Under the pieces are notes generated by a model that was given only the letters and a program-made list of their open reading frames with translations, did not search any database and was not told the origin of the DNA. Made by a program: the position numbers and the translations under genes. From positions 124,001 through 188,000 of the forward strand of contig JBLDXI010000028.1 of the NCBI GenBank assembly GCA_047495785.1: 64,000 nt of DNA. Reading direction: 5' to 3'. This stretch comes from Lepidodermella squamata. Lineage: Eukaryota; Animalia; Gastrotricha. Position 1 is the first letter of the stretch. The number at the start of each line of letters is the position of its first letter. Below are positions 45,449 through 63,938 of this stretch, one piece after another.

Positions 45449-48400
45449 TTACACATTGACGGCTACCGTCGCAATGGCGAGGGTGCGGCATTTCGGGCAA
45501 ATGGCGGCCGCCTCGTCGACGAGCGAGGCCGATACGTCGGCGGCGAGCGCGCCCTGCTGCTTTTTCGAGAATTTGTTCAAGCACTGCGAGTGGTACTTGT
45601 GGCCGCATTTCAGCTGCTTCGACGGCACGCCGCGCCGCTGGCCCTTACACAGCCAACACGCTTCACAATCATTCGCTATATGAAAAAAAATAAGGAAAAA
45701 ATGAAACTTTATGGGAAAAGTTATGAATAAAGAAATCAGAAAAATCGATTAAAATTTTTGTTTGTAAGTTACCTGAGGCAGCGGTTGATGCAGGGGAAGC
45801 CGGGGTCGCCGCTTGCGCAGCCGCATTCAACGAGATCGACATGGTATTGGCGGGCAGGCGCGCGGGCGAGTCCAACGGCGACGTTAGCCCATTACTACCG
45901 CTACCGCCAACGCGACCAGCATCGACGTATTGGCCGAGTTCATCGGGCGAGTGGGCGTACTGGCACGAGTCGCGGCGCGGGCACGAGCCGCTCTTCTTCC
46001 AGTACGAGCAGAACTCGGCGCGGCGTTTCGGGCGCAGCTCGGCGAGGCCGTGCGCGAAGCGGCACTGCGCCGCCATCGTGCACTGGCGCGTCGTCGCGAA
46101 CTGCACGCACAGCTTCGTCTTGTACGTCCAGTCGGCGTGTTCCGGCGGCAGGTTCGGCTTCGGCCGCGCCAGCTTGCCGCGCGCCGACGACAACGCGTTC
46201 GGCAGATACGCGCGCAAACGGTCGATCGACTCGGCGCTCAAATCACGCGGAACTGCATTTTCCTAGAAATAACAAAAAAATCCTAATTAGCATTTTTCCT
46301 CATTTCCAAAGATTATTCCATTTTTAATTCTCCCATTTTGCGACCAATGTTTCATCGAGAAAGATGGAAAACCTCTAATATCGGGTAAGAAAAATCAGGA
46401 AAAATCAAAGTTCCATGTGCTTCAAAGTATCGATTTTACAAATCAGCGATTTTTCCGATATCGGCGATCTAGGAAGCCAACAATAACAAGAAATGTCTAC
46501 CGAGCTGTCGATTCCAAGTAGCAAATATGAAAAATCCCGGGGTCGTGGGATCATCAATATCGACGAAGAGAAGAAATGCCGAAATCGAAAAAATCGGAAA
46601 TATTTAGCACCAATTTAGTGTTGGAGCCTCAATTTTGAAGGTACAAATATTTAGACGCATTCCTTATCGTATATCCCCAACGATACAACAGTTTTAACCG
46701 CGATTTAGAGACATTTTTCCAAGTTTGCCGACTCATCCTTCAAATTGTCTCAACATCCGATTACTTTAACCGTCGAATATTATTCAGGCAATTGTACCAT
46801 TTTTTAAATCTTAAATCTTTAAACCACTCAATTTGTCTTGGAAAACGCAAACGAACCTTGACAGCTCTTCGCAGAATTTCGACGGCAATCAATTTAGCCA
46901 AATTGGCGCCATGCGACGCCAGTTCCAACACGTCGATGATGCGCTCGCGGATGTCAGTCGCGCACGGCAAATGCGGCTTGCCGGCCTGGCTCTTCGCCAC
47001 CTTCTTCACCACCTCCTGCCACGACCCGTCGTCGGATGAGCCCAGCGAGTTGGACGAGCTCGACTCGTGCGACGACGCCGATGTGTTGCCGAAGTCGTCC
47101 ATTTCGAGCAGCGAGCCGGACCGGCGCGATTTGCCAGCCATTACGGGCGTGGTTTTCGGCAGGCTCGTGCCTGTTACGACGTCCTTCGAGCCGCTGCCGT
47201 TCGTCAATTTACTAGCTGCCAATGCATTATTGTTTTTGTTGTTGTTATTGTCAATCGACGACGACGAACCAATAGCCGTAGGAACAGACCCTATCGCCTT
47301 GATCGTAACTAAAATCAATGAAAAAAATTGAAAATTATCAACACCTGAAAATCGATCAAGATTATACAAAGTGACTTCTCTCTTTGTTACCGCTTGAAAC
47401 AGAGGAGTTTCAATTAGATCTCGAAGAAACCGTTTCAACCACATGTTGAGTTGGTTTACAGAAAAGATGTTATGCAATGTTAACATTACAATAGTTGAGG
47501 ATTAGATCAGGTATATTTTAGGCATAGGTCGTGACGATTTTTGCTCTATGTGTACTCAACATGGAAATTGAAAATCTGAGGTGAAGGACATTTAATTTCA
47601 CAGATACTAAGATTTCGTCTCGGAACAATTATCTTATTGAAAGTTAGTCATTACAGATAATCTAAGTCAGTCCCGGCGCTATATCACGGCGAGCTTCGAT
47701 TGTCTTCAAGTGATGAATTTTAAAATTCAAAATTTTATGGACTTTCAACGATTTTAGATTTCTCAAGTCTTCGATTGCAAAATAGGCACAATAGGGTTAG
47801 GTTTTTCCTCATTTAACGATTCAAACATTTTTTTCGTTTTTTCAATTTCAAATATTTTAGAAGTTTCGATTTTTTCAAGTTTTTCGATATTTCCGTTTCA
47901 TTACGAGATCATTTTTCGCGTACCTTCATCGCAAGTAGGAGTAGTGGACCCGGCGCCGTCCGCAGCCGGCGGTGTCATAACCAGCGAAACGGTCGCCGAA
48001 TCGGCATTTAACGCGAACACGCCTGGGTACTGCTTCAAAAACGCAACTAAATGATCGACCGAGTCGCCCTGCAGCGCCCGCCACAGCCTCGGCTCGGCAT
48101 GCGCGGCGCAGTTCTCCAGCAACAAATCGTACGGGACTGAGAGCAGTTTCTTCGCACGCCAGTCCTTCAGGCACGAGAACAGCCAGTCGAAGGCGCACGA
48201 TCGGTCCAAGTCGCTGGACACGATTGAGGAGAATGAAATGGGCGCCGGTGGTGGGGACTGCGCGCCGTTGCTGCTGGTCGGAACTCGAGCGTCGCCGTTG
48301 AACAACTGCAACTGCTGGCCATTAGCAGTCGCTGATGATAAAATGTCGCCGAACAGCGAACTGCTCAGATTGGAGCTAAAATCAACGCAAAATCAAGCAT

Positions 48401-50458
48401 TAAAATCGGCAATAAATATGTAATTAAAAAATTTGATGTAACAAAAAATTTAAAAATGGTTAATAAGAAAATATCCATTCATGGTTTTATAATAAAATTT
48501 TTTATGGAAATTCGCCTTTTCGATCCATTCCAAAAAATACAGATTTTCTCTTTAATGTGATACAATTTCTCACCTATTGCCACCATTCATATTGCTGATG
48601 CTGCTGCTGTCCTTGAGCGATGCCGCAAAGTCAACACCAGCCCAACCGGGCAGCCACGACGCATCGAAACCGCCATTATTGCTGTTGCAGCCAGTACCAG
48701 CAGTTGATACCGCTACAATCTGCTGTTTAGGCGTGTCATTGCTCATTTGCTTGCTGCTACAACTATTATCAACCCAGCCGGTGAGAAACGGCTCAGCCGA
48801 GGCGGTGCCATTATTGGACGACGACGAGGCCGAAATGAGGCCACCCAGCGCCGACCTCGACCCGCCCAGCCCCGACGTCGCCGACAGCAGGCCCGACGCC
48901 AGTCCGGAGCCGATCGAGCCGAACACGCACGGCGAATTCGCCGTCGAGCGGTCGTAGGCCGACGCCTGGTTCGTAAATGGAATGGCGATTTCGGAATTCG
49001 GGGTCGACATGCCGAGTGCGGCCGCGTCGATTGCGCTCGGCAGCAACTGCCCGGCTGCGTCTCGCGCCATTGCGTCGGCCGCCGCCCACGCCGTGCGCAC
49101 CAGCTGCGACCAATTAACTTCCATTTTTATGATTATTGGCTCCGTTTCATGCAACTCGAGACCTAGGAAACAATTAAAAATTGTAAATTTCTCGATGAAA
49201 TGTTTTGAGCTATATATCTTTGGCGAACGTCCATTTAATAGACAAGATCTTAAGGCGTTTAATTAGCTTAATTAGGAGGTCTCATCGAAGTCAGTGATAC
49301 CTACTATTAAAAAACAACGCCTAAGACAGGACATATTATTCAAGCAACAAATATTCAAGTGATAATTAACGCAAAAAAAATCGGGCAACGTCAAAGCAGC
49401 GATCAAATGGAACAAAACGATGTTGCAATGACAATGATCGATTTTAATTAAATTCCCTGAGAGCCTTTCGCGTAAATGAAGCAGCGATAATTGACACGAG
49501 CAGGTCATTATTCTAGCCACAGAATCGGGAACGTTCCGCTTCACGCTAATGCGATTTGATGCTAATGCTGATTCGACATTAAATTTTGTACCTTGAAACA
49601 TTGTCCGAAACTAAGCGTTGCCGATCAACCTCAATCCTGATTTTAAAAACGGCAAATTTTCACTAGCGCAAATTGATGCAATTCCCGATTTCACAAGGCG
49701 AAACTCTGAAGTAGAACCGATTCGAAAAACACTTGAACTATTTCGAAAAAGGGAAAATTTGGGCAAGAAAAATCCATTTCTTATAGAACTTCGAATTTAT
49801 TGTTGACGATGAGGTCAGGAAGAACAAAATGCCGAAACTCATATTTTGTATAGAATTTTCAATCCAAGAACCATGCAATCATTATCATGGTATTTATAGC
49901 GAAATCGTACAAGCCTAAAACAAGACTTAAAATACCAACACAGATGACTAGATTCCAGAACCCCCGAGGCAGGGGAACATCGAAGAAAAATATAGTTCAA
50001 ATCACTGATCCATGTCAATAGAGAAATCAGAGCAATTTGAACTGAAAAACTCGGGGAAAACGCAAAGAAACTGAGCAGTAGCGTTCATTTTAGTGCAATT
50101 TTGTCCGCATGGCGGTCACACTCGCTGATTCAATTATCACTTTTAGGACGCCATTAGGACACAAAATGTTCACGCCAAGTCGTTCTAGAAGCTGATTCGA
50201 AGTCAGATTAATTAAACACAAAAACGCACCTTTCCTCAGCAGTTCGATATTGCCGTCGTACAGCTTTTCGAGTTCATCCCGCTTCGCCGTCAGCTTCGAC
50301 TTGGCGTCGTCGATGAGGCGCTGCAACGCCTCGCCCGGGTTCGGAGACAGCGACCGGATGCTCTTCAACAGCGAATCGAACTTGTCGAGCACGGCCTTCC
50401 ACGACTCGTAACACGCGTCCAGGTACTCGGTTTTCTGACGAAAATTCACGTCACACAT
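45449..50458 (-). CDS. Cluster gene A, ~812 aa: shared N-terminal helical module + winged helix + helical domain + tandem CCCH + RING-H2; exons 50458-50230, 49162-48574, 48375-47924, 47308-46857, 46262-45773, 45675-45449
   Basis: EYLDACYESW...GLELHETEP; LVAFLKQYPGVFAL; YKTKLC-x8-C-x5-C-x3-H twice; CWLC...LKCGHKYHSQC...CPKCR. All introns GT-AG, one frame. Confidence 0.85.
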
Positions 50459-63233: not shown

Positions 63234-63938
63234 CTATCGAACCTCTTTGCCGAGCTCAGCCTTGCCGTGGGCGTACAAGCAGACGGCGCGGCGTTGGCAG
63301 AAACCACGCTCCTCCCACTGGTGGCAGAGGGCGACGCGGCGTTTCGGTCGCAGGTCCGCCTCGCCGTGCGCGTACGGGCAGTTGTCACCGTTCGGGCACT
63401 GGCCGCTGTTGACCGAGTACGGCAGGCACAGCTTCGTCTTGAACGTCCACTGCGCGAGCAGCTTCGACGCCACCTGCGGCGCCTGGTACTTGGACTTGGC
63501 CGACTCGAGCGCGATCGGCAGGATCTGCTTCACCGTCTCGTAGATGTGCGGCAGCGGGCGCGTGACGAAGGCGCCGTCTCGCTCCACCGCGCGGCGCATC
63601 ACCTCCGTGACCGTGTCGCGCGACAAGTGGTGGCCGAAGCGCTGGTGCAGCTGGAAACGCGCCATGATGCGGTCGCGCACGTACTTCAGATCCGGCACGC
63701 CTTGAGGTTTACCCTGCGACTGCTGGTGCTGCTGTTGTTGGGGTTTGACCGGGGCGGCTTGCACGGCTGCATCGATGACCGTGACGGCGACGGCGACAGG
63801 CGACACCGGTGACGATTCGTTGTTCGGAGAAAAAGGAGACGAAGAAGAAGACACTTTGGTGGTGTTTGTAGCATTGCCCAGTGGTTTTGTTACCGTTAAA
63901 TTGCAACTCGCTGCTTGAGGATTCACAACAACTTCGAC
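63234..63938 (-). CDS. Cluster gene E, 3' exon (helical domain + tandem CCCH); 5' part lies beyond the window
   Basis: Acceptor at 63939; KLLAQWTFKTKLC...CPYAHGEADLRPKRRVALC...CLYAHG is homologous to genes A and B. Confidence 0.85.
   Translation of the reverse strand, partial: VEVVVNPQAASCNLTVTKPLGNATNTTKVSSSSSPFSPNNESSPVSPVAVAVTVIDAAVQAAPVKPQQQQHQQSQGKPQGVPDLKYVRDRIMARFQLHQRFGHHLSRDTVTEVMRRAVERDGAFVTRPLPHIYETVKQILPIALESAKSKYQAPQVASKLLAQWTFKTKLCLPYSVNSGQCPNGDNCPYAHGEADLRPKRRVALCHQWEERGFCQRRAVCLYAHGKAELGKEVR

Follow-up and report, generated by a model that had tools for sequence, protein, structure and literature searches.

A tandem array of five genes joining a shared N-terminal module to RNA-binding and RING domains in Lepidodermella squamata

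In this study, a 64,000-nt stretch of the Lepidodermella squamata genome (the window) was analysed, and five co-oriented genes were found on its minus strand at 45449-63938, in the order E, D, C, B, A. Genes A-D start with the same N-terminal module of about 105 aa (N-module) and then continue with different RNA-binding domains, with a terminal RING-H2 domain in A and B. We consider it rather probable that the array encodes lineage-restricted, tandemly duplicated and domain-shuffled cytoplasmic RNA-binding regulators of a compact-genome animal, forming a divergent branch of the DZIP3/RNF214/TTC3/RBM44 group in which the N-module would act as the interaction unit.

The gene models (Table 1) were obtained by stop-to-stop reading of the minus strand together with the DNA itself, and all of them showed canonical GT..AG introns and zero internal stops. 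Gene E was read from its last exon alone, its upstream exons lying beyond the window end. Contigs from an RNA run contained the exact predicted GT..AG joints at every intron of C and D, with an intron depth of zero. In C, exons 1-2 (55842/56161) and 2-3 were joined, with a loose end at 55497 reading into exon 3; in D, exons 1-2 (60355/60915) and 2-3 (57789/59388) were joined, including the connection of the N-module exon to the YTH exon. These joints support well that genes C and D are expressed and spliced as predicted. For exon 4 of A, a second acceptor that also keeps the frame lies about 40 nt ahead of the start. Neither the E-D interval nor the rest of the window contained a further RING, N-module or winged-helix copy; the window also contains an importin gene (43346-38382).

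Table 1 Features of the array, in window positions
Feature	Position	Strand	Basis or remark
Gene A, 812 aa, 6 exons	45449..50458	-	orthologue P0001 is one ORF with the same order
A exons	50458-50230, 49162-48574, 48375-47924, 47308-46857, 46262-45773, 45675-45449	-	
A N-module (aa 1-105), split by 1067-nt intron (50229-49163)	49077..50458	-	87% identity to P0001
A winged helix, WH_Egal-like	47979..48197	-	PF23713, E 2.6e-5, 25.1 bits vs cut-off 27
A small helical domain, intron-split	46170..47024	-	85% identity to relative
A tandem C-x8-C-x5-C-x3-H fingers	45951..46124	-	95% identity to relative
A RING-H2 with long insert	45488..45667	-	sequence reading
Gene B, 755 aa, 5 exons	50921..53550	-	sequence model
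B exons	53550-53130, 53074-52530, 52417-51666, 51599-51218, 51088-50921	-	
B N-module (aa 1-105)	53236..53550	-	alignment; AlphaFold model pLDDT 86.6
B linker motifs: PPGF (53154-53140), acidic-Phe (52982-52947, 52874-52848)	52848..53154	-	
B winged helix	52530..52724	-	PF23713, 27.6 bits vs cut-off 27
B further linker motif block	52204-52136	-	
B small helical domain	51740..51958	-	pLDDT >90 over core; no fold match
B tandem CCCH fingers	51425..51598	-	zf-CCCH, E 2.4e-7
B RING-H2 and conserved tail ending DESEFPSL	50924..51088	-	zf-RING_2, E 8e-12
Gene C, 510 aa, 3 exons (56682-56161, 55842-55497, 55256-54592)	54592..56682	-	sequence and RNA
C N-module	56682-56368	-	
C winged helix	55218-55003	-	PF23713, 23.9 bits vs cut-off 27
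Gene D, 603 aa, 3 exons (61360-60915, 60355-59388, 57789-57392)	57392..61360	-	sequence and RNA
D N-module (aa 1-122; poly-Q head, 7-residue loop insert)	60995..61360	-	57% identity to P0004
D YTH, YTHDF type, split by 1598-nt intron	57548..59604	-	Pfam YTH
Gene E, terminal exon: linker, helical domain, pair of CCCH fingers, stop codon	63237..63938	-	86% identity to relative's E

The N-modules of A-D could be aligned along the motif given in an earlier sequence-only reading of this DNA. W21, D29, G78, T84 and P86 were invariant and Y13, L14, L31 and L64 nearly so, and the core positions were kept at paralogue identities of 21-55%. The paralogous modules retrieved one another by tblastn with E-values of 1e-7 to 1e-21, far beyond chance. 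When 1.84 billion proteins were searched exhaustively with a profile, the N-module appeared only in the related organism described below, and none of DZIP3, RNF214, TTC3 and RBM44 was reached. Furthermore, hmmscan of 11 N-modules gave no Pfam family match at E<=10, PF24905 included. The architecture is thus not that of a widespread annotated family, in line with the lineage-specific system that had been proposed.

The AlphaFold model of the B module (pLDDT 86.6, pTM 0.72) predicts a closed bundle of three helices rather than an extended coiled coil. In three structure libraries this fold matched DZIP3 (hRUL138), RNF214, TTC3 and RBM44 best. The first three rows of an ESM Atlas shape search were DZIP3 (TM 0.81, rmsd 2.1, 106 residues), RNF214 (0.77) and RBM44 (0.72), and the sole Pfam domain that these matches have in common is PF24905. 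In AlphaFold Swiss-Prot, RBM44 of four mammals took ranks 1-4 (probability 1.0) and RNF214 ranks 8 and 17; a TTC3 fragment came second in the AlphaFold cluster library. The Foldseek E-values of these matches were weak (0.07-2.8), and antiparallel three-helix bundles are common: unrelated solved bundles reached Z 8-11 against the model, and bacterial phasins and hypothetical proteins also reached TM 0.75-0.77. Because such bundles match widely, the likeness to DZIP3, RNF214 and TTC3 stays at the fold level. Hence, the resemblance to these proteins claimed in the sequence-only reading held for the fold but not for the sequence, and it is by fold that the N-module may correspond to PF24905 ('TTC3_9th'), the helical domain found in DZIP3, RNF214, TTC3 and RBM44.

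Downstream of the N-module, A and B share one domain order: an Egalitarian-type winged helix, a small helical domain, two CCCH fingers and RING-H2. Gene C contains only the N-module and the winged helix, lacking both the CCCH fingers and the RING. Gene models, alignment and Pfam agreed on the shared module and on the domain inventory of A-E as first read. WH_Egal (PF23713) was detected in A, B and C and zf-CCCH or zf-CCCH_UNK in A, B and E. The PF23713 scores, including 23.9 bits for P0001, were borderline yet consistent around the cut-off, and the A-type and B-type winged helices were barely alignable with each other. The small helical domain of B was modelled with a pLDDT of 82.5. It had been expected to fit the RNF214/DZIP3/TTC3 family as well; this expectation failed, as no Pfam match, PF24525 included, was obtained on B exon 3 and no DZIP3 or RNF214 match in the fold searches (TM <0.5, Z <=5.1).

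As for the fingers, zf-CCCH_UNK (PF25427) scored 40.1 bits in E against a cut-off of 31.1, and 24.6 in B and 18.6 in P0001, both below it, with two fingers only. Finger 1 is preceded by YKTKLC, FKTKLC or HKTILC and finger 2 has no such lead-in; A, B and E all have 13 residues between the His and the following Cys. The RING-H2 of A was read from the sequence as C-x2-C ... C-G-H-x2-H-x2-C ... C-x2-C, and CGHxxHxxC was read in both A and B; C, D and E are without RING. Tails like the DESEFPSL end of B are also present in paralogues of the relative, and the linker motifs of B recur in C as well as in B-like paralogues of the relative. The last exon of E stops after the fingers, and the relative's E likewise ends without RING, as had been claimed for E.

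In D, both exon halves of the YTH domain matched PF04146 (E 2.7e-21, 76.2 bits, and 4.1e-12, 46.4 bits), and the YTH of its orthologue P0004 scored 133.7 bits. Against the PDB, the P0004 domain matched human YTHDF1-3 at E ~1e-51 and YTHDC1/2 at 1e-8 to 1e-13. VWCST and GCWSTPRWKG aligned with the cage positions of YTHDF3, giving W422, W475 and W480 as the cage tryptophans of D. A long low-complexity N/Q/S-rich stretch lies ahead of the domain.

Metagenome contigs of a related organism carried a syntenic cluster in the order DHX34-like, E, D, B, A, importin, the same importin as in the window. Here A (P0001, module to RING), D (P0004, module and YTH) and E (module and CCCH) are each a single ORF starting with the N-module. 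The module is thus joined to the downstream domains in the transcripts of C and D and, in the relative, in the ORFs of A, D and E; and since the relative's E begins with the N-module, the module is probably common to all five genes. The winged helix is missing from the relative's B, and the helical domain from two additional B-like copies. A further paralogue reads N-module, YTH, YTH, RING across two introns (~60 and ~65 nt), both of which preserve the reading frame through the second YTH fold; thus, YTH and RING are directly combined within the family. In the tree, A/A' and D/D' paired (99/98 support) and C was the sister of B. Judged by identity between the window and the relative, the folded domains are far better kept than the linkers: 87% and 95% for the N-module and CCCH of A against 52% for its linker; 86% for the YTH and 57% for the N-module of D against 39% for its middle region; and 86% for the helical domain and CCCH of E against 28% for its linker. 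A word-based search gave no sequence relative for residues 290-717 of the A orthologue.

In the reading that we favour, the N-module would be a common protein-protein interaction unit, binding either to itself or to a single partner shared by the members. A and B would ubiquitinate proteins on mRNPs bound by their fingers, and C, D and E would link further RNA features (m6A in the case of D) to this machinery, perhaps through N-module-mediated pairing with A or B. RBM44 self-interacts (PMC3045441), residues 207-410 of RNF214 mediate dimerisation and its coiled coil drives condensation (PMC11226663), and the proximity partners and substrates of RNF214 are mRNA- or translation-related, including the validated substrate GIGYF2 (PMC10667490).

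Somewhat less probably, the N-module of each paralogue alone would recruit one shared effector, such as an E2 or a complex for deadenylation or translational repression, so that separate RNA readers lead to one output independently, with no joining of paralogues. The module always lies at the extreme N-terminus, whatever comes after; W21, D29 and the loop G78/T84/P86 are invariant and probably surface-exposed across very divergent paralogues; and the model is a closed unit rather than a long coiled coil. The conserved PPGF and repeated acidic-Phe motifs of B-like members, typical of effector-recruiting linear motifs, and the RNF214 substrate GIGYF2 (PMC10667490) point the same way. However, no partner of PF24905 is known, and the sole experimental data for the matched family concern self-association (PMC3045441, PMC11226663).

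More doubtful is a module that simply homodimerises each paralogue, activating the RING of A and B and giving avidity to C, D and E, the array having arisen by duplication and domain loss without interplay. Many RING E3s need dimerisation and RNF214 dimerises (PMC11226663); C is a truncated copy of B of recent origin, and the domain losses in the relative's B and B-like copies agree with this. Nevertheless, RING-less E and YTH-only D are kept between species, pointing to function and not decay, and the retention of core positions among N-modules at 21-55% identity fits either model. With respect to the role, antiviral or transposon RNA surveillance by fast-evolving readers and ubiquitination seems unlikely to replace the germ-granule or maternal-mRNA control first suggested. 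In its favour are the restriction of arboviruses by RNF214 via ligase activity (bioRxiv 10.1101/2024.11.04.621956), the tandem amplification and shuffling of the family, and a divergence between the two species that is much faster in B and D than in A and E; yet the faster divergence is mostly in linkers, the YTH domain being 86% conserved. Finally, an artefact of the gene models, in which the N-module exons would be small genes of their own and their connection to adjacent domain exons an error, is highly improbable, and nothing was found in its favour. It is contradicted for C, D and E by the RNA joints exactly at the predicted sites in D and C and by the single ORFs P0004 and E of the relative, and countered in A by the single ORF P0001 and by an N-module that is itself intron-split.

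Each domain can be compared with a known system. For Egalitarian and LOTUS-like domains, the winged helix PF23713 gave borderline hits in four independent sequences, A, B, C and P0001 (24-28 bits, B above the cut-off), but the exonuclease domain and BicD-binding region of Egalitarian are absent from the window genes. In TIS11/tristetraprolin, each finger follows a YKTEL lead-in and the spacing between the two is 18 residues. The window genes have the same two C-x8-C-x5-C-x3-H fingers and a similar lead-in on finger 1, whereas their linker is of 13 residues and the YKTEL lead-in is lacking on finger 2. Given the single lead-in and the short linker, the fingers fit strict TIS11 less well than the Unkempt type that Pfam prefers; of the TIS11 assignment made earlier, the two-finger pattern and the finger 1 lead-in stood. 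CCCH and RING are also combined in the RNA-binding E3 ligases Unkempt/UNKL, Makorin and Roquin. However, the Unkempt type has six fingers in two clusters against two here, and the ROQ domain of Roquin and the Cys-His motif of Makorin are absent. As a lead only, a protein language model placed the A orthologue next to Roquin and Makorin clusters (score 0.73). With YTHDF1-3, D shares the DF-type YTH, the three cage tryptophans and the low-complexity N/Q/S-rich region; it differs in its folded N-terminal module, found only in this lineage among 1.84 billion representatives, and the relative's paralogue differs in having two YTH domains and a RING.

The closest comparison is with DZIP3, RNF214, TTC3 and RBM44, to which sequence similarity is undetectable. 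DZIP3, RNF214 and TTC3 have a C-terminal RING-H2 alongside PF24905, as A and B have module and RING-H2; RBM44 has PF24905 and RRM without RING, as RING-less C, D and E carry the module with an RNA-binding domain. Unlike this group, the window family forms one tandem array, its N-module lies at the extreme N-terminus and not mid-protein as PF24905 does, and it lacks the PF24525 helical domain (before the RING in DZIP3, RNF214 and TTC3) and the HEPN and TPR parts. The CCCH pair, YTH and Egalitarian-type winged helix are not in the Pfam lists of the matched DZIP3, RBM44 and RNF214 clusters and, to our knowledge, are unreported for the group. In RNF214, the fold match covers 342-452 against 207-410 for the dimerising fragment, and RBM44 self-association is likewise unmapped to the matched segment. 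If the PF24905 counterpart is true, the family would be a divergent branch of this RNA-linked E3 ligase group, and the array would represent a reshuffled, lineage-restricted branch of the little understood DZIP3/RNF214/RBM44 proteins.

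Gene models were built from stop-to-stop reading frames and by reading the DNA at each junction. This gave five co-oriented genes, arranged E, D, C, B, A, and a script check of the models showed GT..AG at all introns and open joined frames. The domains that the sequence-only reading had listed for A-E were backed by Pfam. The Egalitarian winged helix (PF23713) scored 27.6 bits in B, above the cut-off of 27, and slightly under it in A (25.1) and C (23.9). Tandem C-x8-C-x5-C-x3-H fingers were observed in A, B, and E. The RING of B matched zf-RING_2 (E 8e-12), the RING-H2 of A, which has a long insert, is readable in the sequence, and the YTH domain of D gave a Pfam match in each half (E 2.7e-21 and 4.1e-12). 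E lacks a RING, as had been claimed: its stop lies right after the second finger, no RING exon was found when the sequence downstream of E was searched, and neither the E-D interval nor the rest of the window contains a further copy of the RING, N-terminal module, or winged helix. For exon 4 of A, cag/GTGTTGAT and ttag/TTACGATC are both candidate in-frame acceptors, separated by ~40 nt, and our model takes the downstream one. Downstream of A there is a gene of the importin-beta family (IBN_N). An Rfam scan of the whole window gave no match.

Features of the gene array and of related loci (window positions unless a contig of the relative is named)
Feature	Position	Strand	Description
Array of genes A-E	45449-63938	minus	
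Gene A		minus	812 aa, six exons
Gene B		minus	755 aa, five exons
Gene C		minus	510 aa, three exons
Gene D		minus	603 aa, three exons
Gene E	63938-63237	minus	last exon only in window
A exon 4, candidate acceptors	47308-47345		
Importin-beta family gene	38382-43346	minus	
PPGF motif of B	53140-53154		linker
PPGF motif of C	56197-56211		linker
Acidic-Phe motifs	52848-52982, 52136-52204, 55570-55743, 54679-54786		linkers of B and C
RNA joint, D exons 1-2	60355/60915		
RNA joint, D exons 2-3	57789/59388		
RNA joint, C exons 1-2	55842/56161		
Loose end of RNA contig	55497		
Poly(A) tract in RNA contig	56739		
D intron 1, high-depth segment	60628-60825		
D intron 2, CAG/CTG-rich segment	58054-58251, 58131/58132		
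ORFs in D intron 2	58697-58930, 58984-59175	plus	
B orthologue of the relative	L002 12122-14007		
Two tandem B-like genes of the relative	L007 2557-7523		
Module-YTH-YTH-RING gene of the relative	L005 9971-12254		

The helical N-terminal module (N-module) that had been proposed as common to A-D was borne out. The first ~105 residues of these proteins align, with W21, D29, G78, T84, and P86 invariant, and the modules match one another at tblastn E-values of 1e-7 to 1e-21. In A, a 1067-nt intron interrupts the module; a separate gene for the module is thereby ruled out. We then used an RNA data set (X1), which covers the locus with an intron depth of zero, and a DNA data set (X2) with even coverage. 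RNA joints were found between exons 1 and 2 of D, by which the N-module exon is spliced to the YTH exon as had been supposed, between exons 2 and 3 of D, and between exons 1 and 2 of C. All three joints read CT..AC on the plus strand and fall exactly at the predicted sites; furthermore, the loose end of an RNA contig runs on into the start of C exon 3. C and D are expressed and spliced. A poly(A) tract marks where D ends, just 57 nt before the C start codon, an operon-like spacing.

Some features of the D introns were also observed. Summed contig depth within intron 1 was ~4400 in the DNA run X2 against ~60 elsewhere, indicating a very high-copy repeat. In intron 2, contigs of X1 and X2 break into other sequence at a CAG/CTG-rich segment, RNA depth reaches ~11 in places, and two plus-strand ORFs occur for which we have no explanation.

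Subsequently, the full set of 1.84 billion representative proteins was searched with a profile of the module. Six of the nine matches were true (P0001-P0005 and P0007), and because all six lie on contigs from the same few ENA metagenome samples, they probably derive from one related organism, referred to here as the relative. Its contigs also encode C-type lectins, SRCR, trypsin, KANK, and a tyrosine kinase, suggesting an animal with a compact genome. The syntenic contig carries a DHX34-like helicase, E, D, B, A, and the importin in this order, and the genes there have few introns. The importin is ~80% identical and occupies the same position as in the window; thus, synteny reaches past the cluster. 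The D orthologue (P0004) joins module and YTH in a single 526-aa ORF, and the A orthologue (P0001) is a single ORF from the module through to the RING start. The E orthologue, a single 401-aa ORF, begins with the module and ends just past the second finger without a RING. The RING-less state is thus conserved, and the module exon of the window E very probably lies beyond the window end. The original observation was thus confirmed and extended to E; its interpretation is partly supported.

In a tree of the modules, those of A and D paired with their orthologues in the relative (99/98 support), and C was the sister of B within a B-like clade, which makes C a recent truncated copy of B. Domain content varies even inside this clade, since the B orthologue of the relative is devoid of the winged helix that B and C of the window carry, and two tandem B-like genes combine the module, acidic motifs, a CCCH pair, and a RING without the winged helix and most of the helical domain. 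Another gene of the relative encodes the module, a YTH, a second YTH, and a C-terminal RING; it has two GT..AG introns of ~60 and ~65 nt, and the second YTH fold stays in frame. YTH and RING therefore exist in one chain in the relative.

The relative's E, P0001 290-717, and the N-terminal half of P0004 were used as queries in word-based searches of 5.8 billion clusters, which gave back the query only or nothing; this blank counts for little because the E query missed its own protein. Scanning JGI metagenomes with the module alignment gave no match either. As these searches yielded nothing further, the architecture appears narrow, as had been supposed, rather than an annotated family of wide occurrence. 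The members form a conserved gene set and join a single constant N-terminal domain to RNA-binding and RING modules that vary.

Comparison of the window with the relative showed that folded parts are kept and linkers are not. Identity in A was 87% for the module, 85% for the helical domain, 95% for the CCCH fingers, and 84% for the RING, against 52% for the linker and 53% for the winged helix. The corresponding values were 86% (YTH), 57% (module), and 39% (middle region) in D, and 86% (helical domain and CCCH) and 28% (linker) in E. B was the fastest evolving gene overall (CCCH 69%, helical domain 57%, module 51%, RING 48%).

We also attempted to identify the N-module. Pfam assigned the 11 modules to no family and gave sub-threshold coiled-coil noise only, a sequence profile search of the PDB found nothing below E 0.02, and a Protein Atlas feature search was uninformative (scores of 0.71 or less). 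An AlphaFold model from the 11-row alignment (pLDDT 86.6, pTM 0.72) consisted of two long antiparallel helices, an extended segment with the conserved ET-x-P, and a third helix packed back. When this shape was searched against the ESM Atlas, the first three rows were DZIP3 (TM 0.81, rmsd 2.1 Å over 106 residues), RBM44 (0.72), and RNF214 (0.77), and the only Pfam family common to them was PF24905 ('TTC3_9th'). In AlphaFold Swiss-Prot, ranks 1-4 were RBM44 of rat, mouse, human, and cow (probability 1.0, residues ~560-704) and ranks 8 and 17 were human and mouse RNF214 (residues 342-452); a TTC3 fragment was at rank 2 of the AlphaFold cluster library. Foldseek and VIA-align against the PDB found generic three-helix bundles only and no solved homologue. 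The fold searches converge on one protein group and thus give independent support to the likeness to RNF214/DZIP3/TTC3 that the sequence-only reading had proposed, but at the fold level only: E-values were 0.07-2.8, unrelated PDB three-helix bundles reach Z 8-11 against the model, and bacterial phasins and hypothetical proteins in the ESM Atlas have TM similar to the DZIP3-group matches. On the predicted fold, we somewhat favor homology of the N-module with PF24905, and the gene family is a lineage-restricted, shuffled branch with a probable relation to the DZIP3/RNF214/TTC3/RBM44 group.

The second helical domain, which follows the winged helix and precedes the fingers, was also modeled confidently. 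It had been taken as a further sign of the same family; however, neither a PF24525 ('TTC3' helical domain) match nor a fold match in the ESM Atlas, Foldseek PDB, or VIA-align was obtained (TM below 0.5, Z at most 5.1), and its identity with the TTC3/DZIP3 helical domain was rejected for now. The fingers had been called TIS11-type. Finger 1 has the YKT-x-LC lead-in, but the Unkempt type fits better; the lead-in occurs in finger 1 only, the inter-finger linker is 13 residues, and PF25427 was above its cut-off on E. The YTH of P0004 matched human YTHDF1-3 at E ~1e-51 and is thus of the YTHDF kind, and the three cage tryptophans of the D YTH are intact. In the two-YTH gene of the relative, the third cage position is apparently not tryptophan in either copy.

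These features suggest a mechanism in which the constant N-module would serve as a protein-interaction unit, with A and B as RNA-guided E3 ligases, and in which C, D, and E would link further RNA features, m6A among them, to the same output. RBM44 interacts with itself (PMC3045441); residues 207-410 of RNF214 dimerise, and its coiled coil drives condensation (PMC11226663); RNF214 partners and substrates are mRNA and translation related and include GIGYF2 (PMC10667490), the segment matched by the module being pinpointed in none of these reports. By analogy, this literature is compatible with an interaction role for the module. In a heteromeric form of the mechanism, RING-less D (YTH reader of m6A), E (CCCH fingers), and C (winged helix) would pair through the module with A and B, so that m6A and other RNA marks would determine on which mRNPs ubiquitination takes place; we consider this form rather unlikely, and within it the module-YTH-YTH-RING gene of the relative would be a fused form of the same circuit.

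Alternatively, the module may recruit one outside effector. PPGF occurs once in the linkers of B and C and also in the relative's B-like paralogues, and these same proteins carry two to four acidic-Phe motifs of the form D-[LM]-D-D-F-D-T-F-G each; gene A has one LLEMDDFG only. PPGF is similar to ligands of GYF domains, and the acidic-Phe motifs to those of adaptor ears. Judged from sequence, both look like effector-recruiting linear motifs and favor an effector component. As to the biological role, defence is an alternative to the germ-granule role proposed earlier, consistent with B and D evolving fast and with the antiviral activity of RNF214 (bioRxiv 10.1101/2024.11.04.621956). Homodimerisation of the module only is a further candidate reading.

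In the present genes, a domain of PF24905-like predicted fold is the sole constant, around which RNA readers and the RING are swapped. This natural domain-swap experiment points to oligomerisation or docking as a transferable core function. PF24905 is the single domain common to DZIP3, RNF214, TTC3, and RBM44, which have ties to germ cells and mRNA biology as well as to cancer and antiviral defence, and we know of no function for it. To our knowledge, neither a YTHDF-type reader fused to this module nor a single chain that carries YTH domains together with a RING, as in the relative, has been described; the two arrangements suggest that m6A reading may lead directly to ubiquitination. The heteromeric form of the mechanism, if true, would represent an m6A-reader-coupled E3 ligase system without a described counterpart.
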